Shown piece after piece: positions 11,306-61,533 of a stretch of 64,000 nt of DNA (within the stretch, counting starts at the first letter, position 1; each line of letters starts with the position of its first letter). Both the position numbers and the translations under genes were made by a program. This DNA is from Macrostomum lignano (Eukaryota). The notes beneath the pieces are model-generated. The model saw only the letters and a list, made by a program, of their open reading frames with translations, did no database searches and had not been told where the DNA came from. The stretch lies in contig NIVC01000810.1 in NCBI GenBank assembly GCA_002269645.1, positions 62,001 through 126,000 of the forward strand, in the 5' to 3' direction.

Positions 11306-17568
<6,263 letters not shown>

Positions 17569-26100: not shown

Positions 26101-29100
26101 ACTTACATTAACCATAGATTTAACATACAAGTAGATCGTCTTTTGCCAAAATCAAAAAAACTTACGAAAAAGTTCGACTCGGCCGCTGCTAAAAGTCTGA
26201 TTGAATAAAGTCGAACCATCTTTGGCAGTTTGAACGATTTCGCAGTAGACTTTCTGTCCAGAGTCATCGGTAGGGAAGTTCCACGTCCAGAGTGATGACG
26301 CATTCCGACATGCCGAAGGCTGAAACCCGTTTTGGATGCTGAGAGCGAAAATAAGAAAGGTACAGCACTGTTAAAATGGTTTTCCCTACCTTTAAAAGAT
26401 TGAGAATCCTTCCAGAAGCAGAGCAGCTGTGCAGAGCCGGAGGATTACCGCAGTCAGAGACGAGCAGCAGAATTTCAGCTGGAGAATTCGCTCGGGTCTG
26501 CGGTGCGGCCAGCCTGATGGAGGCACTCCGCACTGGGTCTGCAAGGTTTTTAAATATTTTTCACTCCAATTCCATTGCCCTGTTTTTGAGACATTTATCC
26601 CACTCAACTTCCGCCTGAAGAAACTGATTGCCAATGTACTCGTAGTTTTTACGCGTATATTTTTACTACTTGCAATTAGCACTAGAATTCGGCATTCTTC
26701 AATTAAATTTTTGATAGTCATTGTGTGAAAAAGTCAACTTTATCCTTACAAAAAACGGTGATGTTTTGCCGAAAATTGCTGCTCAAATTTTCGAGGCCGG
26801 TCTGAGAGACGCTGCACGCCACTGAGCCGCCGTCCATCCGCCTTGTGGAGTTCGCGCTGAAGTTGGTGCTCTTCGCTCTGCTGCCTGTCTGATCCGACTG
26901 AGTTCCATCAGTGCTGCTCATGCTTATATTCCCACCCTGAGCTGTCCGCAGCCAGCACCGGTGACTGGGCTCAGGGTTGCCACCGACTGACCGAACTGAG
27001 ACTGACACGGGCTCGCCCTCCTTCATCACCAGAGGCTGAGTTGCATTCCATGAGTTCCTTGACGCATCTGTTGTACAAATCAATTCATTTGAATAGCGTT
27101 CCATTCACTCAGAATCATAACAATGGGAAACAAAAACGACTCAAACTCACAGAGCACATCGAGTTTGTCACTGACTACTGACTTGCGAAACAAAACTGTG
27201 CTGCTTTCAGTCATCTGCAAAAGATCACACTGGATTTGCTGTCCGTTGTCTCCGGCCAGAGCGTTCAGTGTCCATAGAGATGTAGCATTTGATGCAGATT
27301 GAGGCTGGAATCAGTTTAGGGAACGAGGTTATTGTCATGTATCACCTGTCAGTCAAATACTACAAACTACAGCCTTACCATAATCTGTGTGAGATTCCTT
27401 CCGGAAGCAGAGCAGCTGTGCAGAGCCGGAGGATTGCCGCGGTCAGAGGCCAGCAGCAGAATTTGAGCTGGGGAATTCGCTCGGATCTGCGGTGCGGCCA
27501 GCCTGATGGAGGCGCTCCGCACGGGGTCTGCGGTGTTTGCATATGCAGTTGGCTATTGTGTACAAATTGTGTACCAACTGAAAAAACTATATATGTGAAG
27601 CCACATGCTGTTGCAAATAATGATAGTCAGCTATCCATCACGTGACTCACACAGAGCAGCTGGCAGCGGATGCCGGGCCCAGGTCTCGATCAGTCCCGAC
27701 TGATTCACCAGACACGCAACGGATGCGCTGCTGCCCCACCGTCTGCTCACAGTTACTGAGAATGTGCTGCTCGAGTTTGTGCTCTGGAATGAGTTCATTT
27801 CACACCATGCTTTCTGCAGGTCTCGGCGGCAAAACTGTAAAATACTCACCGAGACAATCCGCAGTGTCGAGTTCGGGACTCCCTCCGACACCAGAAAGCA
27901 GCTATGACTGGTTGTCACCCAGTTTCCTTGAGATGAGTCAGCTGTCAGATTGACAGTCGCTCCATCTATCCAGCTGGAGTCTGGGGGAAGCAGAAACCGA
28001 GTGCTGCAGGCCTCTGAAACGGTTCGAGTCGGGAGTGCTAAGGCGATTGCTGCGGTGAGAACCAGCTGTGAGAACTCACCGAGTAGCTTAGGCAGGCGCA
28101 GTGTTACTGGTGCTATATTTGTGCTGTCACTGCATTTTATGCTGCAAGATATGTTTCCATTCTTATATTCTGATTGCAGTTTCACCTCAAAGTACGACTT
28201 TGCACCGATATTTCTAGTACTGAACTTCTGTGTTTCACTCTAAAAGCATGCATGAAAGTTCACAAAAAATGTGAATGCGCACGATATTGAGTCGAAAATA
28301 CAGCGCTTTTATTCTTACACTGAAAGTCGAATTCAGTCTTTTTATTGAGATCGTTTTCGGCTTTTTTCGTCTTGATGTACTGCCATAATTTCTCGGATCA
28401 TATGTAAGATAGCAGTCGTACTCTGTTGCAGAAACCAAGCCATCCGTGCTGAGAGAGAACACTGCTGTCCTGTTCACCACCCAGTGCTTGGTGATGCTCA
28501 GATCAAGACTTGGAGCTCCTGAAATTCAAAATCAAGGCTCTGTAAACTATAAATAAAAAAGTCATTTCTATATTAAAGAAGGCATGAGGTAAGAGCGTAA
28601 TGTGATGAATTGATACAATTCTACACAATTGACAGTTCATTTATTCGAAGTTAAACCTAAAGGAGATACGAGTACAATAGCAGCATCAAAGCTGAAAGTA
28701 TAGCAGAAAGTACGCTCGTAGATTCACGGTGGCAACCCCAAACCCAAAAAGGAAAAACACGGTAACATAAAAGATGTACGTCGTAAAGGCACAAAAATAC
28801 GGCTCACAGAGCACAAGTAACGCGCTGCCGAAGTTTCACTTCCAGATGATCAGCGACGCGGTTACTAACGCGGTTGACACAGCTTTCTACAGGCCAAGGC
28901 TGGGTGCCCGTATAACCGCAGCAGGAAGAGTAGCCGATGCCGATGGTGGTTGAGAGCCCGTGAAAGGCCCGGAAGTTAATGTTGCGCTTCACTTCATTGC
29001 ACTTCAAGAGTGGATGTTCGCAGCAGGGTCATGAAGGCCGCGTTGCCAGATGCACCGGTGTTGATGCAGCCCACCGCCGCGCTGTTGTCAGTTTAGAGGG

Positions 29101-32100
29101 CAACCCGGCTGTTCTCGAGCTGCTCCTTGAACATGATGATGGCCTTGCATCAGCGGCAGGCTGCTGCCTTTGTGTTAATATTTTGCCTGCCAGGTGGCCT
29201 CCCGCATCATGATCCAATTCAACGAGCACGATCGGGTCTGCTAATCGGTGGACCACGATGCCGCCGCCCTGCTGGCAGGCGTCCGTCTCCATGACAACTA
29301 GCCGGGTTGGTCGCACCCAGAGACCATCGCATACAAAAGCGGACAGCGCTTGTGGCCACCAGTACAGCTGAGCGAGGAGCTCGCCCGCCACAAGAATCCG
29401 ACGATGATGCCCTTTGATGGCTTTGGTGACGTCAATAGGAGCTCGCAGAAAAACTCGAGCGGCACCATTAGCAACTCACCGGTCTTGGTCTGCGGCTGGG
29501 ACAGCAGACCGGATGTGCTGTCGATATGCACTCCTAGAAGTGTGATGCACACAGGTTGGCTGGTCTTTTCTCAACGTATGCAGAATCTCAGCCTGGAAAT
29601 CAAGTCCAACAGGAAGTTATCTCAGCAACTCTCAACGGTCTCAGCAGTACCGCAGAAGTCGTCCAGATAGACCAAGACTGGTCGCGCAGCTTCAAGCTGA
29701 TGTAGCGCCGAAGCGCCTGTATGAGACGGTGAAAAATGTCGACCGATGCCGATGCACCGAACGGAAGTCTGGTGTCCACCTAGTAGGTCAGCTGTGGATC
29801 ACCCGCTGAGTGCCACTGAAGTCTGAGTGAATACGCACGCTATGATAGGCCTGGCTGAGGTCAATTTTGCTCATGAACCAGTTGCGCTTCAGACGCCGCG
29901 TCAAGTCGTCGACGCTCGCAAACCGCATCCTTTGACGCTCTGTGTAGCAGTCGTTAATGCTGTCTTCGGCGGGCATGGCTGCATCGTGGAATAGGCGGAT
30001 GCTCTTCTTGATGGCTCCCAGCGGGCTGACTTTGACCGGGACATCTACAATATGTCCAGCTCTGATGCGTGCACATAGCGGCCAGTCTCAAGTAAGTTCT
30101 GTGATTTCTTCCTTGATCTGGGACTCAATTAGCTGATAGGTGTCCTCGCGGCTGGATTGGCGACTGGGCCGGCTGCTGGGCTGGCGGCTGTGCTGGAGGG
30201 TTATGTGATTAAGCGGCAGTCAGGACGCTAACAGGCGTGACTATAGCCGATGACAGATGAGGCGAGACGGGAGAAACGGTAAGCGAGGTGGGGGTTGAAG
30301 TTAAAGACGAAGCGGTATGCGAGATAGCAGGCAAAGCAGAATGCGAGGCGGCGTCTATCAGATTTTTTAACCCAAACCATTACTGGGCTGCTGGACCGGG
30401 TGTGGAGCCTCACAGATGCGGCAGAGGTAGATGAAGTTGCAAGGCTGCCTGTGGCATCCGCGGTTGCTGTTGAAAAGCCTGGACATCGTCTACCTCATTA
30501 TGTTGCCTGGCTGTTTCCGAAAGAATTCTTGCTGCTTGTTATTGGCAGGTTTTTAGGCGCGGTCATGAGCTTGACTATGAGATTCTGAGATCTGGGCTGC
30601 CCCCGTCTCTTTGCCGCTCGTGCTGTAACAGATGCATGTCCTGATCATACCGTAGGATGACATTCCAACCGTAGTCTGCTTCCATGATCTCGTCATATGT
30701 ATGTTGAAATTGAGGTAAACCTTCAAGCGCCACAAATCAATATACTTCCATCGCTTCCTTTAGCGACAAGCTGGTTGGACTCAAGCAGTTGCTGCATTAT
30801 TCTGCGTTAGCAGCGATCCTATCGGGGTTGTCGGTCGCGATCATGCAGGACAGGGGAACATGTCCCCCCAGTAAAATCTATGGGGGGACATGCTAATGCT
30901 TTGTCCCCCCAACCCACTTTTGTTGACCTGTTATGGAAATCAATAATTTTGCTTCTGGGCGACAAAAATGGGACCTGCGGCGCTAAATGAGTCCTTGAGG
31001 CGCTAAAATGAGTGCCTGCGGTGCTATAATGATCGCTGACAACACCGATTCTGAAAATAATGTACATGTAGAAATTTAGTCATGTAAATGTACATGCAGA
31101 AATTTTGGCTCTGTCCCCCCCCACCATAAAATCCATGGCGACGCCCCTGGCTTCAGCCAAGCATCTGCTCCGAAGTTCTACGAAGTTCAGGATGAGCAGA
31201 GGGAGTCCAGCCGGCCGAGCTTCCGCTGAAAAAAGGGCCGAAATCACGTCGACATCTCCAGCTGTGGCGGTGGCATGCAGACCGATTTCCTGCCGGGATT
31301 GCGCTTCTTGCTTCTTCAGTTCTAGCAGCTCGATCCGCGACCGAGCTTGCTGAATTTCGCTATCAATTCGGCTCTCTTGGGGAATGTTGACAGCTTCAAT
31401 ATTCTCTGATTCTCTCCCGTTTAGCAGCTGATTTATCGCTGCAATCCGCCTCGTCTCTTTCTGCATCGTCTGGGGCTTCGGCATCGCCTGGCTTTGGTGG
31501 AGCAGCTTTAAGTCGCTCAATAAGCTCTTGCTTGTTTCTCGAAACCGGTAGGTCGTTGTCTCTCAGAGCCGCGCGGAGTTCGGCTGCTGTTAACCGATCG
31601 AGATCATACTTGGCGGCATATAGAAAATTTAGATTTAGAGCTAAATATTTTTGAGCTCACACAGACAGTCAAAAACACTTGAGTAAACAGAGGGGGATGC
31701 AAATAAAGGGGGCGCTTTCACAAACCCAAACTTTCACAATGTTGAAGCGGGGGAACGTCATTCACTTGAAATCTCACTACGCCGAAATTTCTTTTACCCG
31801 AAACTTCACAAACTCAACATTTCATAAACCCGAAATTTCACGTCGAATTACACTGGAAGGAGTGGAGACTTCACAAACCTAAAAGTTCACAATGTCGAAT
31901 AGTCAAAATTAGCTCACCGCTCCATTGCCACACGATAAAAATAACCAACAAAGACAATAGAGCCAACAGATTTAGTTGCTAACTGCAACAAAAAACGTTG
32001 AACAAATTTAAAATTTCTACTTTCTTTATTGTTTTGTAGGTAAAGTAGTGAAGTCTTCTATCTCTCTATTGTATTTTGACGTCGTGAAATATCCGGTTTG

Positions 32101-34881
32101 TGAAAATTCGGCGTTGTGAAAGACAATTCTTTTGACATCATGAAAAGGCGGGTTTGTGAAACGTCCCTGACACAGACAGTGCAGAGGAGTGGGGTTTAAA
32201 ACTGGTTAGTGATTAGTTAGAGCAAGGCACAAACCAAGGCAATTTAGTGTGAGAAAAGCAGTTATGAGTACATTTTACTCAACCAAAGCTTCACCGAAAT
32301 TGCCATTAAGTAATGTTACAATGGCGAAGTAGGTGTTTGGAAACCGTCAAGCTCACCTTTTGCTACACATTGGTTCATCATCAGTTCTTGCGAAGTCTGC
32401 GCGAGACTTCCGTCAGTGCAGCTGTGCCGGCATTGCAGAGTCGCTCCGTGAAATTCCGGTGTCACGTTAATCTCTTTCAAAATGATGAAACTGGAAGTTT
32501 TTGCCTTCTGCAAAATTTATCGGATTCAAGTTGTAAGTTAGTAGCTAATGAATTTCAGCATTTTGTTTCCAGTTCAGCTCTCACACTGCTCAGAGCCATG
32601 ACGTCACCGCTTCGCATCCGGATGCTGCAGTTGACTGCACCAGGTGCGGATGATGAGCTGCACGGAAGCCATGCCTTAACCATCAGTTTATCATTTTCCT
32701 TCAATTTCAACAATTCTCTCTCAAAACATCCAACGCTGCTTTGTTTGCAAAAGTACGCTCCGTAGCACTGGGCATCATTGGCGTCTCGATCAGAATCATT
32801 GCTTCTTCTAAAAGCCAAGCTATTTTCCTCGATCTGCAGCAGCCGGAAGTTCATGTATTTGTCAGCATTGTTGTGAACAAACTTCCTCAGCAGCACAAAC
32901 TGCGGCAACTGTAATGAGATGTCAATGAGGACATTAAAACATGCACGGGAGCTCCAATATTGAAGGACTCAGCAATTGCATACCTTTGAATAGTCTCGAA
33001 CTAAGCAGGTAACTTTATATGCTAATTCTGAGTTAGTTGAGTTCTCGGTGATTCCACACAGGTGAAATTCGGTCAGGCTGTGGTTGAAACCCGCTACGCA
33101 ACCTGGCGGATTCTCAGTCAGACCAGCTGGCCTCTCGTGGCTGAGCAGCACCTCGATGCCCAGGGCTCTGACTCTTTCTGGGACTGGGGCTGGTTTGATA
33201 ATGTGCAAGGAAAACTGTGCACTGATTATTATCATACATTCTTATGCACAAAAACACAGTGTGTACAAACACACAGTGTGCACAAACACACGGTATGCTC
33301 AAACACACGGTACGCACAAACACACGGTGTGCACAAACACACGGTGTGCACAAACACACGGTGTGCACAAACACACGGTGTGCACAAACACACGGTGTGC
33401 ACAAACACACGGTGTGCACAAACACACGGTGTGCACAAACACACTGTGTGCACAAACACACGGTGTGCACAAACACACGGTGTGCACAAACACACGGTGT
33501 GCACAAACACACGGTGTGCACAAACACACGGTATGCTCAAACACACGGTGTGCACAAACACACGGTGTGCACAAACACACGGTGTGCACAAACACACGGT
33601 GTGCACAAACACACGGTGTGCACAAACACACGGTATGCTCAAACACACGGTGTGCACAAACACACGGTGTGCACAAACACACGGTGTGCATAAACACACG
33701 GTGTGCACAAACACACGGTGTGCATAAACACACGGTGTGCACAAACACACGGTGTGCACAAACACACGGTGTGCACAAACACACGGTATGCACAAACACA
33801 CTGTGTGCACAAACACACTGTGTGCACAAACACACGGTGTGCACAAACACACGGTGTGCACAAACACACGGTGTGCACAAACACACGGTGTGCACAAACA
33901 CACGGTATGCTCAAACACACGGTGTGCACAAACACACGGTGTGCACAAACACACGGTGTGCACAAACACACGGTATGCACAAACACACGGTGTGCACAAA
34001 CACACGGTATGCTCAAACATACGGTGTGCACAAACACACGGTGTGCACAAACACGCGGTGTGCACAAACACACGGTGTGCACAAACTTTAGCAGTACTCT
34101 TTAGCGAACTTTAGCTAACACAAACCGATGCAAAATATCCTAATACTTACAATCAAGTCTCCCATAGACAGTGACGGAGAGCACTGAGACACACCGGTTG
34201 AGCTTCAGCAACAGCCACTGGTAGCCTGAGGGGTCCGCGGTGTTGCTGGAGTGGAAATAGTCCCATTGCGATGGTCTGGCAGATGAATTGCGGAAGCAGC
34301 CGTTGCTGTTGTACCATGACGACTGCCAGGCATTATCGATTTCGGATTTGGTGATGTTGAAGCCGAGGCCTTCAGTGTTAATAAAGTTTTAGCGACTTGA
34401 AAACTGTCTGACCAAAGCTTTTTGTAAAGTGGCGTAGTATCTTCAGATTTTTATCAATAATTCAAGGCCCATCGTTTGCTTTCCAAAGAAGCGCTTAAGG
34501 TATACAATGCTCGCATACAACGACATCAAATGACCTAGTGGATCACTCGTCCAATGTACAAGGATGAAAAATATGTACAACCCGCCTGATCACGCTAAAC
34601 TTTGGCTACTCTAATGGCGAATGAGTGAACCTTTTAAGCAACAGTGACAGTTCAAAGGTATTGAATTCGATTTCTGTGCTACTAACTCATATCCAGTCCC
34701 CTTGAGTCACAGTTTGGCCTTCAAGACGCTAATGTTATTGCTCATTATATTAAAGTCAAGTAGCCTACAATAATTTTTAAACGAAGTTGTGCAAGATAAA
34801 AGCTAAAAAACGGTACTTACAAACGTAAAAGCAGCAGAGACTGCAGCTGACGTACAGAATCTGTTTTTTCTGGAGACTCAT
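23153..34881 (-). CDS. G2: lectin-like + ~9 Ig-like domain type I membrane receptor with short tail
   Basis: Signal exon 34881-34821 (MSLQKKQILYVSCSLCCFYV, phase-1 GTAAGT donor). Lectin-like exon 34369-34151. Further exons at ~33180-32985, ~32905-32570, ~32510-32355 and ~28520 down to ~23530. TM exon (VAVLCCSLAVVAVATVAAVLKRTR...PNDPS, GTGAGT donor). Last exon 23179-23153 (TVYYEADN*). AATAAA on minus strand at 23115-23110. Confidence 0.85.
24362..24645 (-). mobile_element. SINE family A copy (G2 intron)
   Basis: Reverse-complement homology to 11967-12268. Confidence 0.8.
25765..26018 (-). mobile_element. SINE family A copy with internal deletion (G2 intron)
   Basis: Reverse-complement homology to 11967-12268. 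Confidence 0.75.
28900..30010 (-). mobile_element. Degenerate DIRS/Ngaro-type (tyrosine-recombinase retrotransposon) RT-RNase H fragment in G2 intron
   Basis: Minus-strand motifs FMSKIDLSQAYHSVRIH (RT), ITLLGVHIDS, VMETDACQQGGG and TDNSAAVGCINTGASGNAAFMTLLR (DIRS-type RNase H), broken by stops and frameshifts. Confidence 0.7.
33246..34085. repeat. 17-bp minisatellite (GGTGTGCACAAACACAC)n, ~49 units, G2 intron after lectin exon
   Basis: Tandem units containing the TGTGCACA palindrome; source of the HKHTVC/VHTVCLC ORFs. Confidence 0.97.
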
Positions 34882-36151
34882 TTACTCAAAAAAATTGACG
34901 AAGCGTTTTTTGATGGGACCGAATTCTTGTCTGAAAATATATTCAGTCTTAAATCGAAAGAACTTGGTGAAAAATTTTGTTTAAGTCAGCTGAAGTTCTC
35001 AATTAGGGAAATATCAATGGTGATAAACGCTTTCTACTTTTTTCCTGGTGCAAAGCTGCATGCCGTCTTATTTAATAGCTGCTGCGGCTCTGATAACTCA
35101 CTTAGCCTTGCAACGACTAAATGGGAACCTTGATTACCGTATTAAATATACCGCGGTCGCACCGAAAGTTTTATAATCCCACATATTGCTACTTCAAAGG
35201 TAGTAGTATTGAACTTAGTATTGAACTTAAAAATTTCCAAGCTTGAACACCAAGCTTCCAGGAAAAATTAACTACTCCTTACAAGGTTAAGCAACAATTA
35301 ATTAAATAGTGTAATTAATAAGCGTCTAATTAACACTCAAAGCACTCCAAATCGAAGCAGTTCCCCCTTTGCCTTCTCATGGCCCGACGTAGGGTACGAG
35401 CTCGAAAGGCAGGGGATATGTGTTATGAATGTGCCTGCTCTACACTATTATGTAATGTACGCATACATCGCACTGATGTTGGATGGGCATCTGTCAGTTA
35501 AACAATATATATTGATTGCTAGCTCACAAGGTAAAGCCATCTCGATCCTTTCTTCTCTCAACACCTGAGTTGATTTCAGCCATTTGGCTAGCAGCCAAAA
35601 CAATAGGACCTGCATGGAAGGCACATATGCAAGGATTTTACCTCTATAGCTCATTCACTTCTTGCCGAGCGCTCTGCTTGATTAGACTTTACACGTACAA
35701 TCTTGTGCGATTGTGGACAACATCAAGGCAGGTGGCAAAGCGTGATGAGGGATCCGCGGCATTTCCAAGAGCTTGCCTGAGCTGCCTTTCGTTCTGAGCA
35801 ATCAGAGCTCCCATCTGACCTCCAAAGTGCTCTAGGCCGCTGTGACTGCCGAGATCTGGACTCTGACACCTGGAATCTGGACTCTGAGACCTGGACTTTA
35901 CCTCACGAGGCTCGCTCAACAGTAAGTCGGCACAGAGCACGCAACACTGGCCTGCCTGTACAGTCTCTAAGGTTGGTGATGATCAATTTCACTGATGCAG
36001 CTCTCTGCACCTGCCTTGCAAGCCTGCAGCTGCGCCGTCAATGACTCACTTCAGCCAGCAGGTCGCAGCATCCGCGCTGAGTCGAAGCTCGAACTGCAGC
36101 AGCGGCGCACCCTGAGAACATTCTTGCTGCATTTGTGATATGGCTAAATTA

Positions 36152-39100
36152 TACTCAGCAACATTGAAAAGTTTCCACCCTAGCGCGCGAAGGGTCAACG
36201 TTGCGAAGGGTCAACGTTTTGGTGGGTGCAGATATTCATGGTTTGAGCCATAGACAAATATATAATCCGGATTCGAACGAAGCAAAGGAACAGCACAGAA
36301 ACAAAGTACGCGAGCATGGGTGACAACTTGCCCAGAACAGGGTCAGTAACGCGTATAGCAGCCACGTGCATGCAGCAGAGCGCTCACTCTCCGGGGCATC
36401 CCCAGAAACAGGCGTCGCAGAGTTGTTGCCATGCAGTAGACAGTGATTCGCGCAGTTGGGCAACGTTTTGCGGCGGATTGTCGCGCCGAATCGAGCGCTT
36501 CAGGTAATCCCAAACGTGCTCCCTGGGATTCATGTCCGGTGATCGGGATGGCCAGCGCAAAAATCGCAGGTGCAGCAGCTCCTTCAGATGCGCCACAGCG
36601 GCTGCGCGATGCGGTGGGGCGTTGTCGTCTTGGAGGACGCTGTTCCCCACGCCACCACATGAAGCATCAATGAAAGGCAGCAGGCGCGTCTGTAGAAGGT
36701 TGGCGTACGACTCGGCAGTCACAGTCGCATCCAGGAACACGAGCTCCGTCTTCGCGTGCATTGTGATGCCTGCCCACACGTGAATAGAAGCTGACTGGCT
36801 CTCAGAGTTTTGCACGTACTGCGGCAGCATCTCCTGGTGCGGCTGGCGCCACACGCGAATGCGGCCGTCGGCACGGAACAATCGAAAGCGGCTCTCATCA
36901 TGAAGAGTTTAAGAGTGGTGATCAGTCACTCAAAAACTCCCACTTCTAGACACTGGGGAACAAGTGCCTAGGTATTTACCAGTTCAAATGACTTACTGCG
37001 GCGGATCCTCTTGTGGTTGGTAGACTTCTGGTTCTTGCGGTGTGTGTGACTCTGTCTAACTTGGCTGAGCAGTAGTGACGGCCGATTTGGAGTATTTTTC
37101 TTGAGTCCTTGACTTTTATCTGTGGGTCGACCAAACGAGAGCGAATCAGAACTTCTTAACGGTCCTCGAGCTCGGAATTAACAATAGAACGTGCGCCCTA
37201 ATGAACAATTGAATTCTCTAATTTTCTGTGATAGGTCCTCCTGAAGGGCGGCTTCTTCGTTACGTCCGAAACGTAACGGATAACTCAATTAAATCAATAA
37301 ATCCTCTAGGAATATCCTAGGAAACAAGGAGGCCTTTCTCTAATGTATCGACAATGAACTGCTCTCGTATAACTCAATTAACCAACTTATTAGCGCTAGT
37401 AACAAATAACTAAATCGGGTAAACGCTTACCAATTGGACAGGTGTGGTCCCTCAGAGATTGGTCTTCTTGTTTCTTCAGAGTCTTCTTAGAGATTGCTCC
37501 GAGTCTGAATTTTTGACTCGAATTTTGACTTATATTTATAGCAAAATTTTGGAGAAAAACCGGTTTGGGATTGGGTATTTACTTAGGTCAAAAATGTTTG
37601 ATTAAGCGGTCATGCATGTTTGAGCATTACCTGAGTTAAACAAATACAGCTGTTGAAATCCGGTTCCTTGATCAAACAATGTAGGTTTCTAAATCATTCT
37701 GTTTGCGCGTGATTCCTAAAATAGATATGACTCCTTTTGAAAGAAATTGACTTCCTTAGAATATTACTTTAAGTAGAGTAGTACATGGTCTAATAACTCT
37801 CTGCAATATGATACAACCACAGAGTCTCAGGCGCCTCTCTGGGCTTGGGCTGCACCGCTGACCAAACCCGGAGCGCCGGAATCAGTGACTTTCATAGCTT
37901 TGATTCAGATCTTAATTTAAAATGAGTTTGTACTACTCAACTGACGAGTAGTTTATCGTTAAACTATATCGAAACCAGCAGTCGTGCACTTTCGGGATAA
38001 TAAAAAATGAACGAAAAGCAATAGGGGATTTGCTTGAAACGTCTATTAACCAGATTTGTTAATAAGAATTTATTTGTTTGGAATATCTCAGCCAGTCAGC
38101 GAGCACTGATGTCTTCTCGTCTCTGATGAAGAATCCAGCTCGAAGCTCTATTGGAGGATCATTCTTTTCTCGTACTTGGCGACCGGCCTGATTTCGGGGG
38201 TGGTGGTTGGCTCTGGCATCCTGTTGGTGTCCCGGTCCAGCAGTTTCTGCAGAACAGCCAGCAGCTTCTGCAGATTGGGCTTCTCTTTTTGGTTCTTGTG
38301 ATCCCGGTTTTTTAAAATGAACGGCGTGACGGTCGAAACGTCTGGAATCAGATCGATTGAGAGTTCAGGGAGTTCGTTGAAGCTGAGCATTCCACGGGAT
38401 CGGGTCTCTCTCTCCTCTACTGAATTGGAGCCTATCCTGCCTATATCCAGTTTCTATCCTGCCTATATCCAGTTTCTATCTAGCCTATATCCTTTTTAGA
38501 GACCGCTCTGAGTCTGAATTTTTGACTCAAATTTCACTTATATTTATAGCAAAATTTTGGAGAAAAACCGGTTTGGGATTGGGTATTTACTTAGGTCAAA
38601 AATGTTTGATTAAGCTGTCATGCATGTTTGAGCATTACCATATATGGGGTTAAGCAAATACAGCTGTTGGAATCCGGTTCCTTGATCAAATAATGTAGGT
38701 TTCTAAATCATTCTGTTTGCGCGTGATTCCTAAAATAGATATGACTCATTTTGAAAGAAATTGACTTCCTTAGAATATTACTTTAAGTAGAGCATTACGG
38801 TATGGTCTAATAACTCTACAATCAGTAAAAATCACTCGCCGCCACTGCTGCTGCCCTTTGCATTTCCCATTGTTTAGCAATTTGACGATCATTATTCCCA
38901 TTTTTAATGCAGAACAATCCATTGCTACAAACAATGCATTGTTTTTAGGATCGTCAAACAGAAAAACAATGCAAAGAATCAGCGGTCGCGGTCAATAGTG
39001 TTGATTATTTATCCATTGTTCCCGGCTGGCCACATGGGTTGGGGTCAGGCGTGGCCGTTTGCGCATCTTACGGGATCGCAGCATGGGTCTGCTCCATGTG

Positions 39101-39280
39101 ACTGTTTCCTTCGACCTGTCCTGTCTGGCGTCTATGACCCAAGTTTTTGTCTATGGCCGAAGTGCGTGTTGACGAAATCATCAATCGTCTATGGCACAAG
39201 TCTGGCGACAAAAACTAGTTTTGAAACTCTAAATATACACGGCTGGCGCGAGGGTGGAAACTTTTCAGTGTTGCTGAGTG
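36152..39280 (-). mobile_element. Tc1/mariner (DD34E-type) transposon split by a ~2-kb nested insertion
   Basis: TIRs TACTCAGCAACATTGAAAAGTTTCCACCCT (36152-36181) / AGGGTGGAAACTTTTCAGTGTTGCTGAGTG (39251-39280), each flanked by TA. Catalytic part 36343-36903: DESRF...VWAGI...QDDNAPPH...SPDMNPREHVW...MPRRV...GCYTRY, one frameshift. N-terminal piece RKRPRLTPTHVASREQW at ~39000-39070. Confidence 0.88.
37490..38817 (-). mobile_element. LTR-like direct repeats (~315 bp, 37490-37800 and 38498-38817) within the insertion that splits the Tc1
   Basis: Two near-identical copies, each with a minus-strand TATA-like CTATAAATATAA. The element class is not determined. Confidence 0.55.
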
Positions 39281-40092
39281 TATAAGGCTATATATAGCTA
39301 GTTAAATTTTTCGATTTTCGAAAAATTTTTTCATCACGAGTTGAAAAAAAATTCACCGAGCTTTGCGAGAATTTGCTCATATAACTCGTGATGGTCATAC
39401 GAGCTTGTAGTGATTCGGTCATACGAATCAAACTAAGGAAAGCAGACACTCGTAGCTACGTGTGCGTTTGATGTCCTCGTGTCTATAAATCTCAGGAAAA
39501 GTCGTGAAATCTAGAAAAAAATGAAATTTTTGCGTTCAATAATTTCGTATTTTAAGTAAATTACATCAATTTTTTTATTCTGTTGTTGAATTTATATAAC
39601 TACGACCAAGCCATTGATAAAATATTAATAACGAGTGTCCTAAATATGCATCATTATATTAAGTAATTTAGGTAGTAATTCTTTACAAACGATTTTTTGC
39701 CTTATCAATGCATAATGCCGTGTTGGAATATCTACCACTGTGGCAAATGCTGGACCTAAATCTGTAAGCCTCAAAAGAAGGTTTTAGCCCAGGTTTTAGC
39801 ATATAGCAGTCCGTGGCTAAATGGACAATAATTATATTTACACGTACATAAAGCCCCAGGTCCATTGCCTATTGGCTAAAGGTGAATTGGACGGTTGGAT
39901 GTAGGGTAATTTCTACCCATATTACGAGTGTAGCTATTTCACTCGTTGAGCCGCCGTATTGATGGTGAAATTTCACAATATTGTACCATCTAAGCTTCCT
40001 TCGAAGTTTAATCTTGATAATCGCAGCAGACAGAGGGCCTCTTCTGTTCCGCAATCGTATTTTGCAAAACTGTAGACACCCTCAGCATCTAC

Positions 40093-43000
40093 ATGGATCT
40101 GCAATTGAAGCTGTTTTTGTGCTTTGCTGTCTATTGCTTCAGAAACTGTGAGGAAAATTGTTTTATTTCTGATATTGTATAATTATATCATAATTATTGC
40201 GCAATGGCATCTTGATAGAAAATAATGTAATAACCATTTATTTGACAGTTCAATTACCGGCACAGTTTCAAACCCACTGTTGAAACTTGCTACGCTAAGA
40301 GTAGGGGGTCGTACTACGAGCGTATAAAGCTTTCGTAGCGTAAGTTCGATCTTATGTCGGAACTTTTACACTGCGGAGATTGGAGTTGAGAACGGTCTTA
40401 TCTTACAATGGCTTTATAGAATTAGTAGGATGTGAATGTTACACCTTGATAAAGCGTCACTTTATCAGTGGTAGTTCTTATTGCAACTTTAACTCACATG
40501 GAACTTCATACTCATATCAAGAGTGTTAGAGTGGTGGAAGTTCAAGCTACAAGCTACATAAACCAAAAGAAACTGTAAATAATCATATCATGCATGTTAA
40601 AAAAATGTGAATGTCAAATGTCATTAGAAATCTAGTGATCTTCTAAATTACAAAAACAAGTCTCATACAATTAAGACTATCATGATTGAGTGTTCGGCTA
40701 CTGGAACATTGCGTCTTTTACAGACTCCAAAAGAGCACCAACTTGAAGTTCAATGAAGTAGTGCTAGTAACTACAATGATGCTCGCTCAGATTAAGATAG
40801 ATTACCCGTTTAAGTAGTAATCTAGATGTATAAATGCTTGAGGGTTAAATAATAAGCGCTTCTTTGGAAAGCAAACGATGGGCCTTGAATTATTGATAAA
40901 AATCTGAAGGCACTACGCCACTTTACAAAAAGCTTTGGTCAGACAGTTTTCAAGTCGCTAAAACTTTATTAACACTGAAGGCCTCGGCTTCAACATCACC
41001 AAATCCGAAATCGATGATGCCTGGCAGTCGTCATGGTACAACAGCAACGGCTGCTTCCGCAATTCATCTGCCAGACCATCGCAATGGGACTATTTTCACT
41101 CCAGCAACACCGCGGACCCCTCAGGCTACCAGTGGCTGTTGCTGAAGCTCAACCGGTGTGTCTCAGTGCTCTCCGTCACTATCTATGGGAGACTTGATTG
41201 TAAGTATTAGGACATTTTGCATCGGTTTCTGTTAGCTAAAGTTCGCTAAAGAGTACTGCTAAAATTTGTGCACACCGTGTGTTTGTGCACACCGCGTGTT
41301 TGTGCACACCGTGTGTTTGTGCACACCGTGTGTTTGTGCATACCGTGTGTTTGTGCACACCGTGTGTTTGTGCACACCGCGTGTTTGTGCACACCGTGTG
41401 TTTGTGCACACCGTGTGTTTGTGCACACCGTGTGTTTGTGCACACCGTGTGTTTGTGCACACCGTGTGTTTGTGCACACCGCGTGTTTCTGCACACCGTG
41501 TGTTTGTGCACACTGTGTTTTTGTGCATAAGAATGTATGATAATAATCAGTGCACAGTTTTCCTTGCACATTATCAAACCAGCCCCAGTCCCAGAAAGAG
41601 TCAGAGCCCTGGGCATCGAGGTGCTGCTCAGCCACGAGAGGCCAGCTGGTCTGACTGAGAATCCGCCCGGCTGCAAGGCGGGTTTCAACCACAGCCTGAC
41701 CGAATTTCACCTGTGTGGAATCACCGAGAACTCAACTAACTCAGAATTAGCATATAAAGTTACCTGCTTAGTTCGAGACTATTCAAAGGTATGCAATTGC
41801 TGAGTCCTTCAATATTGGAGCTCCCGTGCATGTTTTAATGTCCTCATTGACATCTCATTACAGTTGCCGCAGTTTGTGCTGCTGAGGAAGTTTGTTCACA
41901 ACAATGCTGACAAATACATGAACTTCCGGCTGCTGCAGATCGAGGAAAATAGCTTGGCTATTAAAAGAAGCAATGATTCTGATCGAGACGCCAATGATGC
42001 CCTGTGCTACGGAGCGTACTTTTGCAAACAAAGTAGCGTTGGATGTTTTGAGAGAGAATTGTTAACACTGAAGGAAAATGATAAACTGATGGTTAAGGCA
42101 TGGCTTCCGTGCAGCTCATCATCCGCACCTGGTGCAGTCAACTGCAGCATCCGGATGCGAAGCGGTGACGTCATGGCTCTGAGCAGTGTGAGAGCTGACT
42201 GGAAACAAAATGCTGAAATTCATTAGCTACTAACTAACAACTTGAATCCTATAAATTTTGCAGAAGACAAAACCTTCCAGTTTCATCATTTTGAAAGAGA
42301 TTAACGTGACAAAGGAATTTCACGAAGCGAATCTGCAGTGCCGACAGAGCTGCACTGACGGAAGTCTCGCGCAGACTTCGCAAGAACTGATGATAAACCA
42401 ATGTGTAGCAAAGGGTGAGCTTGAAAGAGTTTTGAGACGGTTTCCAAACACCTGCTTCGCCATTGTAACATTACTTAATGGCAATTTCGGTGAAGCTGTG
42501 ATTGAGTAAATAAATTTCAGTATCTCATGTTTTTCTCGCGCTGTATCTTTCAATAAATGAACTGCCGATTATGTAGAACTGTATCATCAATCCTTCTCAT
42601 TTCCAGTTGGTCATTTACCAACTTTAACGTGAAATTGAAGTCACCATTTCTTTTTTCTTTTTCTAAGCTTTCAGCTTGAATTTCAGGAGCTCCAAGTCTT
42701 GATCTGAGCATCACCAAGCACTGGGTGGTGAACAGGACAGCAGTGTTCTCTCTCAGCACGGATGGCTTGGTTTCTGCGACAGAGTACGACTGCTATCTTA
42801 CATATGATCCGAGAAATTATGGCAGTACATCAAGACGAAAAAAGTCGAAAACGATCTCAATAAAAAGACTGAATTCGACTTTCAGTGTAAGAATAAAAGC
42901 GCTCTGTCTATATTTGCGTGTCAATATGGTTGAGCATTCACATTTTCAGTAAACTTTTCTGCATGCTTTTAGAGTGAAACACAGAAGTTCAGTACTAAAA

Positions 43001-46000
43001 ATATCGGTGCAAAGTCGTACTTTGAGGTGAAACTGCAATCAGAATATAAGAATGGAAACATATCTTGCAGCATAAAATGCAGTGACAGCACAAATATAGC
43101 ACCAGTAACACTGCGCCTGCCTAAGCTACTCGGTGAGTTCTCACAGCTGGCTCTCACCGCAGCAATCGCCTTAGCACTCCCGACTCGAACCGTTTCAGAG
43201 GCCTGCAGCACTCGGTTTCTGCTTCCCCCAGACTCCAGCTGGATAGATGGAGCGACTGTCAATCTGACAGCTGACTCATCTCAAGGAAACTGGGTGACAA
43301 CCAGTCATAGCTGCTTTCTGCTGTCGGAGGGAGTCCCGAACTCGACACTGCGGATTGTCTCGGTGAGTATTTTACAGTTTTGCCGCCGAGACCTGCAGAA
43401 AGCATGGTGTGAAATGAACTCATTCCAGAGCACAAACTTGAGCAGCACATTCTCAGTAACTGTGAGCAGACGGTGGGGCAGCAGCGCATCCGTTGCGTGT
43501 CTGGTGAATCAGTCGGGACTGATCGAGACCTGGGCCCGGCATCCGCTGCCAGCTGCTCTGTGTGAGTCACGTGATGGATAGCTGACTATCATTATTTGCA
43601 ACAGCATGTGGCTTCACATATATAGTTTTTTCAGTTGGTACACAATTTGTACACAATAGCCAACTGCATATGCAAACACTGCAGACCCCGTGCGGAGCGC
43701 CTCCATCAGGCTGGCCGCACCGCAGATCCGAGCGAATTCCCCAGCTCAAATTCTGCTGCTCGCCTCTGACCGCGGCAATCCTCCGGCTCTGCACAGCTGC
43801 TCTGCTTCCGGAAGGAATCTCACACAGATTATGGTAAGGCTGTAGTTTTCAATATTCGACTGACAGGTGATACTTAACAATAACCTCATCCCCTAAACTG
43901 ATTGCAGCCTCCATCTGCATCAAATGCTTCATCGCTATGGACACTGAACGCTCTGGCCGGAGACAAGGACAACGGACAGCAAATTCAGTGTGATCTCTTG
44001 CAGATGACTGAAAGCAGCACAGTTTTGTTCAACAAGTCAGTAGTCAGTGACAAACTCGATGTGCTCTGTGAGTTCGGGTCGTTTTTGTTTCCCATTGTCA
44101 TGATTCTGAGTGGATGGAACGCAATTCAAATGAATTGATTTGTACAACAGATGCGTCAAGGAACTCATGGAATGCAACTCAGCCTCTGGTGACGAAGGGG
44201 GGCGAGCCCGTGTCAGTCTCAGTTCGGTCAGTCGGTGGCAACCCTGAGCCCAGTCACCGGTGCTGGCTGCGGACAGCTCAGGGTGTGAATATAAGCATGA
44301 GCAGCACTGATGGAACTCAGTCGGATCAGACAGGCAGCAGAGCGAAGAGCACCAACTTCAGCGCGAACTCCACGAGGCGGATGGACGGAGCGGCTTTGCT
44401 GTGCCGGGTGTTTCAGCAGAATTTCACTGATCTGGCTGGAGATTTCCAGCAAAATGTGACCGTTTATTGTGAGCTGCACTTTATGCATGCTGTATGTGTA
44501 CATAGCTCATGGTGCTTCAGCTAGACACATTTCTCGGATAGCAAATGCTGCATTGGTTGGTGAAGCAGAGCAAGCAATGTGGAATGAATTTCAATGTGAA
44601 AACGACATTTTCTTCAATTCAGACAAATATTTGTATTTGCAAGCCACTAATCTATTAGTAATGTATGTAATTACTATATAGAATTATGCTCATCTGAGAA
44701 AGGTTAAGCTGAATATGCTCTCATGCTCTTGGCTTGACGATTGTCCTTGAGATTGTATTGTGAGCCACAATTTAAAAATGAAATCAGGCTGGATTTCATG
44801 TGTACATAGCTTAGATGTGTACACAGCTTATGGTACTTCAGCTAGACATATTTCTGATAGGAAATGATGCATTGATTGGTTTAGCAGAGCAAGTAATGCC
44901 GAATGAATTTCAAAATGAAATCGACATTCGCTTCAATACAGATAAATGTTTTCTCATACCGGATTCTTAAGCCATTCGTCTATTAGTAATAATTACTATA
45001 TAGAAGCATACTCATCTGAAAAAGGGGGAAATGAAATTATATCATGCTCTTGGCTTGACGATTGTCAAATTGAATATAGTACACAAGGTACTTCTATCCC
45101 TTTCCACTCGCATAAATCTTGGTGTACAGTCTGTCTGTAACTTGCATGTGCATATAGACTTTGTTAAGAAAATCGTAGGTAATTGTTCCTGAAATAATTC
45201 ATCCTTATGTTCAACTCTCAGATCCCATCAGCAGCGCATCTCTCAGAGTCCCTTCAGGCGGTATTCGAAGTGGCTCAAATGTTAAAGTTGAGCTGCTGGC
45301 CTCTGATCGGGGAAATCCGCCTGCTCAGCATTTCTGTCAGCTGGATGGAAGAAGTTTGAGCAAAGAAAAGGTAATGAAATTCGAATCAGTTAACAAAAGC
45401 CCAGTCTATAATATTTAGCTCCTACTTAATAAATTTGTTTTTTTCAGGAACCATCAGAGTCGAATGCATCCTCTGTGTGGGCATTCAGTGCACAGGCCAG
45501 TGACAATGGGCTGAGAGTCGCCTGCCAAGCCGTGCAAGCTGCTGCAGACGGTCCAGCCGTGTTTAACCTGTCAGTGAGCAGCGAGCCACTCAGTGTGCTG
45601 TGTGAGTTTTCTGATCACCGAAATTACCCATTAAGCGACTGTCTGTTGATAGTTTCCAAGAAACATTGATTTCTAACTCTAAATTAAAAGATTTTTCCCT
45701 ACTAAATCAGGAAAAATTCACCGCAAAATATAGTTTTGAAAAGACTAAAACCAAGTTCGGTTCGTTTTAGTGGAGCGAAAAATCAATCACTGTACTCGTA
45801 AACTTAGTTTAGTATCCACAGAAGCATACGGGATATAAAATATTTAAATATTTATATTATATGTAATATAATATGCAACAACATTTTCTGTCATGCACAG
45901 ATCCACCGAACAACTCGTGGACTGCAACTCAGCCTCTGGTGATGAAGGAGGGCGAGCCCGTGTCAGTCTCAGTTCGGTCAGTCGGTGGCAACCCTGAGCC

Positions 46001-52107: not shown

Positions 52108-52365
52108 TATCCTAATGGGCAGGTGTGCAACCGACAGCTCAGCCGCAGCTATTGCTGTACACGGCTGTTCAGCCCAAGGACTGGGGGGTCGCCACACACA
52201 CCCTCAATTACCCCAGCTAATGCTGGCACCCATTTTACAGCTGGGTAAACTGAAGCAATGCAGAGATAAGAGGCTTGCTCAAGGACACAAATTGTTACGA
52301 ATGGGTTGAGAATCGAACCCCAACCGTTACGTCGTGAGGCCGACGCTCTGACCACTCGGCTACAG
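52108..52365 (-). mobile_element. SINE family A copy
   Basis: Reverse-complement homology to 11967-12268. Confidence 0.8.
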
Positions 52366-60552: not shown

Positions 60553-61329
60553 ATGCCCAGGCTGCTGATCCTGGTGGCTTTCGTCTGCAGTCTGTGCTGC
60601 TTCAGATGCTGTGAGTTTCGGAAGGACTTTTGAAAAGGACACACATTTAAGGGAATACTGCAAAGGCACCGACGGATTCAGAAATTCTCCCAGATTAAAA
60701 CAGATCAAAGTAATTCGAAGGATATACTACTCATTTCTATTGAAGCCTTTAGCACAAACCATATACGAGTATAGTTATGTAAAAAAATACAACTCATAAA
60801 GCTAGCAAAAAACGTAACGAATCGTTTGAATAGGCCGTGGCATCAAGGTCTCCAGAGCTGAGATGGCCAATGCCTGGCAATCGTCTGTCTACAATCACCC
60901 AGAATGCGATTGCTTCATCAGATCAATGGACAAGCCGGGGCAGTGGCCCTATTTTCATACCAGCGACACTCCGGACCCCTCCGGCTACCAGTGGCTGCTG
61001 CTGAAGCTGACCCGAAGTGTCCCAGTGCGCTCCATCACTGTCTATGGGAGACAAAACTGTAAGCCATTGGCGTTCCATTACTGAGCTACAGTAATAATGT
61101 ACCCAGAAGTAATTGCCCTCGTTGCACATCAGTCAGCCACAGAGCACTGGGCATCGAAGTGCTGCTCAGTGAGAAGAAGCCAGCCGGTCTGGATGAGGAT
61201 GCACCCAACTGCACTGCAGCCGCTTTCAGTCACAGTCTGTCCGGATTCCAACACTGCGGCTTCACCAGAAATGACAGCAGCAAGTCAAACAGGACGCAAG
61301 TGACCTGTTCAGCTGAGGGCGATGTTAAG
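60553..61329 (+). CDS. G5: 5' three exons of a G4 paralog (signal, lectin-like); remainder absent from the window, interrupted by gypsy sequence (pseudogene or long intron)
   Basis: Exons 60553-60610 (MPRLLILVAFVCSLCCFRC, phase 1), 60834-61058 and 61133-61329. The third exon is nearly identical to G4 53564-53772. Confidence 0.8.
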
Positions 61330-61533
61330 GTTTGTCAAGTGTTGTACTCTGCGCCCCCCCCTTCTTGGCACGTTGATTTTAACTCCTATGTACATTGCAT
61401 CGCAGATGTACACTTACTCTAGAGCAATCGATTACAGAGCTTTGAGCTCAAATATATAATCGTGCCCTACGCCCAATTCGGGGCCGTATACGTTTGGTTC
61501 AGCTTAACTTCTGTCTCTCGCGTCAGTCACTAC

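Follow-up and report, generated by a model that had tools for sequence, protein, structure and literature searches.

Two head-to-head lectin-like/Ig genes of Macrostomum lignano share a mosaic 5' block, probably through interlocus gene conversion

Introduction

Two neighbouring genes of Macrostomum lignano, here called G2 and G3, have nearly the same 5' part joined to very different 3' parts. How did this arrangement arise, and do the two genes encode paired receptors? An earlier note on this DNA had proposed that gene conversion keeps one ligand-binding end on two receptors with different signalling output. We examined the locus within a window of 64,000 nucleotides, which is the whole stretch of DNA analysed and to which all positions refer.

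Results

Gene models of G2 and G3

G2 and G3 belong to a cluster of five M. lignano genes. Both have intact ORFs and are transcribed divergently, and the head-to-head layout described earlier holds.

34881-23262, minus strand: gene model of G2 with 22 exons and an intact ORF of 1319 aa; predicted signal-peptide candidate, F-lectin/discoidin-like head, ~10 Ig-like domains, Ala/Val-rich transmembrane segment (TM) and short tail
34881-34821, minus strand: candidate signal exon of G2
40093-48567, plus strand: gene model of G3 with 22 exons and an intact ORF of 1342 aa; predicted head as in G2, own Ig stalk, poly-Leu TM and 61-aa tail
40093-40147, plus strand: candidate signal exon of G3

The exon models are based on ORF and splice logic and on a few junctions matched to database proteins: the E19/E20 junction of G2 agrees with the M. 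lignano protein P0010, and the E8/E9 and E9/E10 junctions of G3 agree with the pattern in P0002. The exons of G2 join at GT-AG sites in matching phase and amount to 3960 nt without internal stops. Every Ig module of both genes repeats a 'GGNP.P...C(W)' motif and a second Cys, and the Pfam C2-set_2 model matched G2 with 29.8 bits and G3 with 19.6 bits (cut-off 21); this conserved Cys...Trp...Cys pattern and the match to a Pfam Ig model identify the modules as IgSF (C2-set). The C-terminal module of G3 had no homologue among 5.8 billion proteins, so that its functionality is suggested only by the open frame and the conserved Ig hallmark residues. P0010 and P0011 are variants of G2 exon 19, and four almost identical M. 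lignano proteins share one protein cluster. Judged from their sequences, the products of the five-gene cluster would be type-I membrane proteins of an uncharacterised family so far found in the genus Macrostomum only, and both G2 and G3 are presumably expressed. The architecture predicted for each product is an F-type-lectin/discoidin-like domain at the N terminus, ~10 C2-type Ig-like domains in series, a single TM and a short tail.

A sharply bounded inverted repeat

The 5' parts of the two genes form an inverted repeat whose arms are 97.4% identical (80 mismatches in 3,081 alignable nt).

26830-34497, minus strand: G2 arm, 7,668 nt, starting in intron 1 and stopping midway in the Ig4 exon
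40853-44388, plus strand: G3 arm, 3,536 nt, exons E2 to E12a
G2 34497-33823 vs G3 40853-41527: inverted block 1, 97.3% identical
G2 33507-32274 vs G3 41265-42510: inverted block 2, 95.7% identical
G2 28529-26830 vs G3 42676-44388: inverted block 3, 96.7% identical
34498-40852: unique spacer between the arms, 6.36 kb, containing the candidate signal exons of G2 and G3 as well as remains of repeats
37483-37800 and 38492-38817: direct repeat in the spacer
28654-32273 (boundaries approximate), minus strand: decayed retroelement of ~3.6 kb in intron 5 of G2, with frameshifted RT and SAP-domain ORFs
G2 33245-34086 (49.5 copies) and G3 41265-41527 (15.5 copies): 17-nt minisatellite in intron 2

The earlier note had called the G2 arm an inverted near-copy of the G3 arm. 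The inverted homology is indeed present, but the copies are unequal in length (7.67 vs 3.54 kb). The insertion in G2, with ORFs matching RVT_1 (E=2.7e-5) and SAP (E=5.6e-8), is missing in G3, in which 42511-42675 takes the equivalent place.

Both ends of the repeat are sharp. In a sensitive self-comparison, the arms had no similarity upstream of 34497/40853, and further inverted homology in the spacer was limited to one 37-nt match; past 26830/44388, at the MDG motif of the Ig4 exon, identity falls to ~58%. The protein heads are identical at 670 of 694 aligned residues (96.5%), compared with 27% in the remainder of G2 and G3, and the downstream exons have nucleotide identities of at most 76%. 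Everything past the MDG motif had been described as unrelated or highly diverged, which is true of the stalks, TMs and tails but not of the post-MDG sequence of G2, which has 94% identity to exon E15 of G3.

An inverted repeat of this kind might be an assembly artefact in which haplotypes or homeologues of one gene were misjoined in a polyploid, repeat-rich genome. Long-read assemblies are known to contain false inverted joins, and M. lignano has many near-identical gene copies, such as the four-protein cluster and P0010/P0011. However, the 6.36 kb between the arms is unique sequence without a fold-back junction, the 3' gene halves that follow the two arms are intact and differ from each other, and the repeat ends in an exon on one side and in an intron on the other. 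The arms also differ in the retroelement, in minisatellite expansion and in patches of old divergence, and the window contains no Ns. We therefore regard an artefact as very improbable.

Patchwork of divergence within the block

Mismatches between the arms are strongly clustered, as the patchwork reported earlier would have it: in 100-nt bins their index of dispersion was 3.23, compared with 0.95 ± 0.25 under permutation (0 of 5,000 permutations that high; p≤0.0002). BIC segmentation resolved tracts at 2.3%, 20%, 0.68% and 4.85% divergence. By feature, divergence ranged from 0% to 14%, with exons and introns in both hot and cold tracts.

G3 42544-42671 vs G2 28653-28534: diverged patch in intron 5, only ~68% identical
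G3 42900-42961 vs G2 28305-28251: diverged patch in intron 6, mismatched at 20% of positions and with indels
G3 42962-43846 vs G2 28250-27366: coldest tract, exons 7-10 with introns, 6/885 mismatches (0.68%)
G3 43847-44127 vs G2 27365-27091: hot tract, intron 10, exon 11 and intron 11, mismatched at 8% of positions and with an in-frame indel of 6 nt

The two intron patches had already been singled out, and other introns proved to be near-identical (0-0.8% divergent). The patch in intron 5 aligns with a local score of 72, compared with 27 ± 4.6 for shuffled sequence, and is bordered by sequence of 97-100% identity; it is a remnant of old divergence. Had a retroelement simply inserted into a new duplicate, the interior would not be left at ~68% identity between near-identical flanks. 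Such a mosaic takes at least two events of recombination or conversion.

A breakpoint in the Ig4 exon

44151-44468, plus strand: Ig4 exon (E12) of G3, in which high identity to G2 stops at 44388
26750-27067, minus strand: Ig4 exon of G2, mosaic
45901-46218, plus strand: exon E15 (Ig5) of G3, matching the Ig4 exon of G2 at 94.8% identity across 305 nt
26390-26538, minus strand: exon E13 of G2, 92.8% identical to E10 of both genes (G3 43685-43833)

The Ig4 exon of G2 consists of two types of sequence. The first 238 nt (5') go with G3 E12 (17 vs 3 informative sites) and the last 80 nt (3') with G3 E15 (32 vs 1), and a three-sequence test placed a breakpoint within this exon (Fisher p=5.9e-10). 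These data indicate that the 3' boundary of the block is a recombination breakpoint in the Ig4 exon. The likeness of G2 E13 to E10 marks another copy at exon level among the family's genes.

Comparison with G4, another member of the family, gave incongruent relationships along the gene. In the head, G2 is 96.5% identical to G3 and ~49% to G4; in the membrane-proximal domain, TM and tail, it is 46% identical to G4 and 22% to G3. G2 thus joins G3 in the head and G4 in the tail. The 3' end type is common to G1, G2 and G4, and that of G3 is different.

Origin of the shared block

The 3' halves of G2 and G3 share 27% of residues and the intron-5 remnant is ~68% identical, suggesting that the two genes are old paralogs. 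A sharply bounded block, regional tree incongruence, mosaic tracts and a third-sequence breakpoint are all found here, as in gene conversion, and the account we consider probable is that the 5' block of these old paralogs was overwritten by interlocus gene conversion in several tracts. Non-reciprocal recombination between inverted copies 6.4 kb apart would have overwritten ~3.5 kb at the 5' end (696 residues, from exon 2 into the middle of exon 12), with tracts of unlike age. The 3' junction would lie at the end of the family-conserved stretch in the Ig4 exon, a conservation that would offer homology for strand invasion. Exon-sized exchanges may also have taken place between Ig exons, within and between genes (G2 Ig4 3' end/G3 E15; G2 E13/E10).

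The abrupt 5' boundary is a point against conversion: there is no detectable homology past it, and a non-homologous duplication breakpoint would fit there too. Such an event, in which one recent partial inverted duplication or template switch copied ~3.5 kb of the 5' part of one gene onto another family member, or beside it, and made a chimeric gene with no ongoing homogenisation, is an unlikely alternative. The diverged patches would then stem from later small paralog exchanges, indels and the retroelement insertion. Besides having nothing alignable past 34497/40853, most of the block is at similarly low divergence (0.7-2.3%). In addition, G2 is a canonical family member throughout and the 3' end of G3 is an orphan, which suits a G3 that gained a G2 head, and derived amino acid changes occur in G3 alone (9 to 0).

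However, the intronic segments of 20% and ~32% divergence inside the block are beyond point mutation since a recent copy, so that a single duplication would also need extra conversion-like replacements. The low-divergence tracts differ ~3-fold from one another and ~7-fold from the 4.85% 3' segment. Moreover, the in-frame, mid-exon junction lies exactly where family-wide homology stops, a position that homologous exchange predicts and that a random breakpoint would hit only by luck. A further point against conversion is that the hot patches could be imports from paralogs outside the window, and no donor was found within it. Taken together, repeated conversion between old paralogs seems to fit this comparison, which is of one genome copy, better than one recent duplication, and conversion rather than duplication-fusion is the likely source of the block.

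The lectin-like head domain

The head domain is encoded by three exons in each gene.

40981-41199 (E2), 41592-41788 (E3) and 41864-42187 (E4), plus strand: F-lectin/discoidin-like domain of G3
34369-34151, 33180-32984 and 32908-32585, minus strand: the same domain of G2

Of the 219 nt of the first exon, 3 differ between the genes, exactly as had been counted. Pfam F5_F8_type_C matched the domain with 13.1 bits (E=0.11) and 11.8 bits, under the gathering cut-off of 28.2 (E range 0.11-0.27), and there was no sequence match in the PDB. With an N-terminal family profile, hmmsearch reached the Tigriopus protein P0020 (E=1.4e-12), which has four F5_F8_type_C_2 domains and the cluster name 'Fucolectin tachylectin-4 pentraxin-1 domain', as well as other F5_F8_type_C_2 proteins. 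Against P0027, hhalign gave E=0.0022 at a probability of a mere 13% and aligned the motifs QSS, W-x-x-D/K-L and (N/G)R...R-x-x-G-x-E-I/V. The two Arg aligned here lie seven residues apart, as in F-lectins (compare the residues of eel agglutinin). An AF2 model of the homologue P0001 was of low confidence (mean pLDDT 54, pTM 0.54). Its best Foldseek matches were all galactose-binding-domain-like, with E no better than 2e-3 and TM scores in the range 0.3-0.5, and included the F-lectins 1k12 and 3cqo, the DDR1 discoidin domain, CBM32 and the GnT-IVa lectin domain. The domain differs from F-type lectin and F5/8 type C domains in its length of ~245 residues, with an additional Cys-rich C-terminal extension. 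The label 'lectin' would denote remote F-type lectin/discoidin homology only, and sugar binding by the head is putative.

The paired-receptor reading

Paired receptors are closely linked genes with near-identical extracellular N-terminal parts and divergent TM and cytoplasmic parts. Both features are found here, with arms 6.36 kb apart and an Ala/Val-rich TM in G2 as opposed to a poly-Leu TM in G3. In true paired receptors, selection would keep a shared ligand on the heads and the tails would signal oppositely or differently. Heads of 96.5% identity on unrelated anchors and tails, intact ORFs in both genes and a geometry resembling SIGLEC11/16 agree with this reading. So does the dN/dS of ~0.48 in the shared part (dS 0.0355, dN 0.0172; Fisher p=0.019), a value below 1 that points to some constraint.

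However, the suggestion of an activating/inhibitory pair did not hold for the modelled proteins: neither tail contains an ITIM, ITSM or ITAM, and neither TM contains K, R, D or E. Matches to [ILVST]xYxx[ILV] in G2 and G3 were confined to the ectodomains, with none in the modelled tails. In G2 and G4 a conserved GTGAGT stands where the tail ends, suggesting that further exons, outside the models, may extend the tails, and so the absence of motifs is not final. The heads also differ by 26 amino acids and a 2-aa indel, including five clustered substitutions where the lectin-like domain has a hypervariable residue (K/V following the invariant Cys). All nine polarisable head changes are in G3 and none in G2, with G3 departing from conserved family residues; this points to drift or divergence of the G3 head rather than preserved sameness. 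We thus consider a true paired-receptor system improbable, and any effect on ligand binding or signalling would be conjectural.

Discussion

The closest known system is SIGLEC11/SIGLEC16, whose genes lie head-to-head ~9 kb apart and share a ~3 kb similar region with fragmented converted tracts (PMC5701461). The earlier note had drawn this parallel, and the layout of G2/G3 is closely similar: the distance between the arms is 6.4 kb, the near-identical block likewise spans the N-terminal binding domain together with the Ig domains next to it, the homogenised sequence is broken into fragments, and the membrane-proximal, TM and tail regions differ. Constraint on the converted exons also appears relaxed in both systems (PMC5701461). 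In contrast to SIGLEC11/16, the putative binding domain of G2/G3 would be an F-lectin/discoidin-like jelly roll instead of a V-set Ig domain, the pair has neither an ITIM tail nor a charged TM for a DAP12-type partner, and the host is a flatworm.

Snail FREPs and amphioxus VCBPs are invertebrate recognition families of the lectin-IgSF kind in which recombination generates diversity. The G2/G3 family resembles them in combining Ig-like domains with a lectin-type domain, in being lineage-specific, clustered and multi-copy, and in mosaic exchange. FREPs have a C-terminal fibrinogen domain and VCBPs a chitin-binding domain, whereas G2/G3 have another lectin fold and domain order and, as predicted from their sequences, are long membrane-anchored chains. 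We know of no immune role or somatic diversification in the G2/G3 family.

Interlocus conversion is an ordinary mechanism, and the family concerned is uncharacterised and so far seen in Macrostomum only. The locus as modelled carries nearly the same distal ectodomain on two different stalks, membrane anchors and tails.

An apparently Macrostomum-specific family of lectin-like/Ig genes

The window is eukaryotic and contains many minisatellites and much retroelement debris, and the protein matches to the studied genes are all from M. lignano, a free-living flatworm. Five members of one gene family lie within it.

Family members in the window
~11334-17568, plus strand, G1
34881-23262, minus strand, G2
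40093-48567, plus strand, G3
~53233-56470, plus strand, G4
from ~60830 (recognised 60830-61420), plus strand, G5, interrupted from ~61500

G1 and G2 are tail-to-tail, and G1, G4 and G5 flank the head-to-head G2/G3 pair. G5 appears to be cut short or broken up by a retroelement of gag-like type (zf-CCHC, PNMA-like) reaching from ~61500 to the window end. The exon at 60863-61015 is identical to the database protein P0008 across 51 residues, G2 exons 19-20 show local identity of 98-100% to the proteins P0010 and P0011, and a database look-up with the protein P0015 led to L001, the locus of a distant paralog. A literature search on this Macrostomum family found nothing relevant. The family, which combines an F-lectin/discoidin-like head with a long Ig chain and a transmembrane (TM) segment, appears to be confined to Macrostomum and is uncharacterised, with no described function.

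By joining ORF segments via GT-AG sites with matching phases, we obtained models of 22 exons for both G3 (4,029 nt, 1342 aa) and G2 (3,960 nt, 1319 aa), with the frame open throughout. Several modelled junctions recur in database proteins of M. lignano, such as that following '...AVLY' in P0002 and that joining 'NISVIF' to 'PSNWISW' in P0010. In both proteins, three exons encode the N-terminal domain (~245 residues), which is followed by a chain of Ig-like domains, many of them split over two exons, with a recurring 'GGNP.P...C(W)' motif, and then by a single TM segment and a short tail. Pfam C2-set_2 scored 29.8 bits in G2 and 19.6 bits in G3 (cut-off 21). The candidate signal-peptide exons both lie beyond the repeat that links the two genes.

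Candidate signal-peptide exons
40093-40147, plus strand, G3, MDLQLKLFLCFAVYCFRN
34881-34821, minus strand, G2, MSLQKKQILYVSCSLCCFYV

The C-terminal module of G3 (47613-48567) consists of a membrane-proximal Ig domain, a poly-Leu TM segment (12 consecutive Leu) and a Tyr-containing tail, and searches of the window and of 5.8 billion database proteins found no homologue of it.

Other repeats were observed around these genes. A run of large minisatellite arrays (2352-8644; periods ~24, 29, 12 and 41 nt; copies 86-97% identical) fills much of the first 9 kb. In G1, a long trinucleotide array at 15721-16207, which on the minus strand would encode poly-Ser, is placed between an Ig4-type exon (15371-15694) and the membrane-proximal exon (16210-16359), and is either a microsatellite within an intron or a low-complexity stalk within the coding sequence. 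In G4, a tandem repeat with a 34-nt period (54826-55154; copies 98-99% identical) immediately precedes the 'PCTTH...LLPANTSW' exon; its unit repeats the start of this exon ('EPCTTH'), and the acceptor side of the exon therefore seems to have been tandemly duplicated. Copies of a dispersed repeat of ~270 nt, 84-90% identical and in either orientation, are present in the G1 region (11966-12232), in G2 introns (24369-24644, 25782-26022) and downstream of G3 (52161-52364), and probably represent a short transposable element of non-autonomous type. A direct repeat, 86% identical, is found upstream of the first recognisable exon of G1 (10865-11152) and just 3' of the G3 stop codon (48594-48902).

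Remote relationship of the head to F-type lectins

Pfam searches with single exons and with the assembled head, the shared N-terminal half, gave no significant match (F5_F8_type_C on the assembled head, E=0.11, was under threshold), and a PDB sequence search with the head gave no match. A profile of the N-terminal domain of the family had only 22 matches among 1.84 billion representative proteins. Cluster look-up of 10 of the 22 returned M. lignano in every case except P0020, a Tigriopus protein (E=1.4e-12) with four F5_F8_type_C_2 domains and the cluster name 'Fucolectin tachylectin-4 pentraxin-1 domain'. In addition, two proteins at the weak end of the matches, P0027 and P0028, are true F5/8-type-C_2 proteins by Pfam, and hhalign aligned the QSS, W..(D/K)L and (N/G)R...R..G.E(I/V) motifs (E=0.0022, with a probability of only 13%). 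Structure modelling and protein comparison were based on the homologue P0001 and on single-exon translations. The best structural matches of the AlphaFold model of the homologous domain in P0001, a low-confidence model (pLDDT 54), were all galactose-binding-domain-like folds and were weak (E ~2e-3 to 2e-2): the GnT-IVa lectin domain, DDR1 discoidin, CBM32 and the F-lectins 1k12 and 3cqo. The lectin identity of the head is thus supported only remotely; 'F-type-lectin/discoidin-like' is a fair label, and sugar binding is putative.

An inverted repeat links G2 and G3

The earlier note described G2 26830-34497 as an inverted near-copy of G3 40853-44388. Indeed, the repeat is real and has these coordinates, with three blocks linking the genes.

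Inverted blocks
G2 34497-33823 with G3 40853-41527, 97.3% identical
G2 33507-32274 with G3 41265-42510, 95.7% identical
G2 28529-26830 with G3 42676-44388, 96.7% identical

The arms differ at 80 of 3,081 alignable positions (2.6%), and mismatches number 3 in the 219 nt of the first lectin-like exon, the same count as noted before. Both ends are abrupt: nothing is alignable upstream of 34497/40853, and within the Ig4 exon identity falls from ~98% to ~58% directly after the codons of the MDG motif. The arms are also of unequal length (7,668 nt in G2 and 3,536 nt in G3), which the note had omitted. G2 intron 5 holds ~3.6 kb of extra sequence, in which ORFs for a reverse transcriptase (RVT_1 E=2.7e-5) and a SAP domain (E=5.6e-8) are frameshifted, and a 17-nt minisatellite in intron 2 has 49.5 copies in G2 and 15.5 in G3. 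No more inverted homology was found in the spacer within the window. A fold-back assembly artefact was rejected, and an assembly artefact of any kind is very unlikely, since the spacer is unique, each arm runs into a different intact 3' gene half, and there are structural differences between the arms. The spacer also contains a direct repeat of ~320 nt (37483-37800 and 38492-38817; 92% identical, ~1 kb apart), which may represent LTR-like ends of a decayed element.

A patchwork of divergence within the shared block

Divergence between the arms was not uniform but ranged from 0% to 14% per exon or intron, which bears out the patchwork reported earlier. The index of dispersion of mismatches in 100-nt bins was 3.23, against a null of 0.95 +/- 0.25, and was reached in 0 of 5,000 permutations. 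Change-point segmentation gave four tracts under a BIC-scale penalty and a single segment under a harsher one.

Divergence between the arms
Introns 3 and 8, 0%
Exon 5, 7.3%
Intron 10, 12%
Intron 6, 13.9%
Tract 40853-42899 (G3), 2.3%
Tract 42900-42961 (G3), 20%
Tract 42962-43846 (G3), 0.68%
Tract 43847-44388 (G3), 4.85%, dividing into 8.0% and 1.5% under a lower penalty

Because exons and introns are present in hot and cold tracts alike, coding constraint does not account for this pattern. Its most telling part is in intron 5, where G3 42544-42671 and G2 28653-28534, adjoining the retroelement, are ~68% identical (score 72 versus 27 +/- 4.6 for shuffled sequence), with flanks that are 97-100% identical. 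Had a transposon simply inserted into a fresh duplicate, the sequence beside it would still be near-identical; the intron-5 interior instead looks like old paralogous sequence missed by homogenisation. At a finer scale, five substitutions fall within 11 nt at G3 41668-41677 and G2 33104-33095 (CCCGGCTGCAAGGCG versus CCAGGTTGCGTAGCG), with 140 and 282 identical bases on either side. They cause one Lys to Val change and two synonymous changes, and the residue, hypervariable in the family (K/V/T/I), adjoins an invariant Cys of the lectin-like domain. This cluster resembles the outcome of a micro-exchange or of a multi-nucleotide event. The hot patches lie at G3 42236-42510, 42900-42961 and 43847-44127, and a search of the window for their donors found none.

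The 20% and ~32% divergent segments inside the block led us to reject a uniform single recent duplication. The main rival, in which a chimeric gene arose through one recent inverted duplication of partial length, would still require later conversion-like replacements for these two segments.

Two gene halves with incompatible histories

A three-way alignment of the G2 Ig4 exon, G3 exon 12 (Ig4) and G3 exon 15 (Ig5) located the 3' boundary. In the first 238 nt of the G2 exon, 17 informative sites agree with exon 12 and 3 with exon 15; in the last 80 nt, 1 agrees with exon 12 and 32 with exon 15 (Fisher p=5.9e-10). The 3' boundary of the shared block is a recombination junction. The earlier description of everything after MDG as unrelated or highly diverged therefore does not hold for this stretch of G2, which is 94% identical to the matching part of G3 exon 15, with no match between the flanking introns. 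Moreover, G2 exon 13 matches exon 10 of each gene with 92.8% identity. The protein P0002, otherwise only ~50% identical, has the same protein sequence in the first half of the Ig4-type exon, and this conserved stretch is a natural place for homologous exchange to resolve.

Downstream of the shared block, the exons of G2 and G3 are at most 76% identical in nucleotides, and the proteins past MDG are 27% identical. Across the membrane-proximal domain, TM segment and tail, identity is 46% between G2 and G4 but only 22% between G2 and G3, and one type of 3' end is common to G1, G2 and G4. In contrast, the heads of G2 and G3 are 96.5% identical and those of G2 and G4 ~49%. These conflicting identities indicate that the two gene halves have incompatible histories.

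A recent partial inverted duplication would also need a lucky in-frame junction exactly where family-wide homology stops, and we consider it rather unlikely, though not negligible. Repeated interlocus gene conversion between old paralogs is the best reading and a probable one. G2 and G3 would be old paralogs, in which the 5' 3.5 kb was overwritten piecemeal, more than once, by interlocus conversion between inverted copies 6.4 kb apart, with further exon-sized exchanges among the Ig modules. The conversion proposed in the earlier note is reasonably supported by the mosaic and the breakpoint, but copies from one genome alone fall short of proof.

Divergence of the shared head and comparison with paired receptors

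The coding sequence common to both genes has a dS of 0.0355 and a dN of 0.0172, a ratio of ~0.48 (Fisher p=0.019), and the 697 codons of the head contain 26 amino-acid differences and one 2-residue indel. When these differences were polarized with other family members as outgroups, G2 had the family residue and G3 the derived one at all nine positions with a clear ancestral state (binomial p=0.004), indicating that the G3 head is leaving the family consensus. This change argues against strict preservation of sameness, and recalls the relaxed constraint reported for converted SIGLEC11/16 exons (PMC5701461). SIGLEC11 and SIGLEC16 are likewise head-to-head, ~9 kb apart, and share a ~3 kb N-terminal block with fragmented tracts (PMC5701461). 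The gene geometry of G2/G3 is a close parallel to theirs.

Unlike paired receptors, G2 and G3 are without the defining signalling features. No ITIM, ITSM or ITAM was found in their modelled tails, although the tail exons of G2 and G4 both end with a conserved GTGAGT, so that further tail exons may lie beyond the models, and neither TM segment has a charged residue. The genes can therefore not be classed as an activating/inhibitory pair. The functional inference of the earlier note is unsupported. G2/G3 behaves as one common head mounted on two anchors. It is conceivable, if improbable, that the pair is an independently arisen flatworm counterpart of vertebrate paired receptors. By this analogy, recurrent conversion would keep a lectin-Ig head nearly the same on two anchors and tails, in a fast-evolving Macrostomum-specific family for non-self, microbial or mating-partner/gamete recognition that would signal without ITIM/ITAM.

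Clustered paralogs are well known to gain a common binding head with differing anchoring or signalling through partial gene conversion. The mechanism itself is of a known kind. G2/G3 would provide a clean non-vertebrate example of it at base-level resolution, and the locus displays the shuffling of Ig modules within and between genes through exon-sized exchanges. The family could serve as a useful entry point to recognition biology in a flatworm model, whether immune, allorecognition or reproductive.
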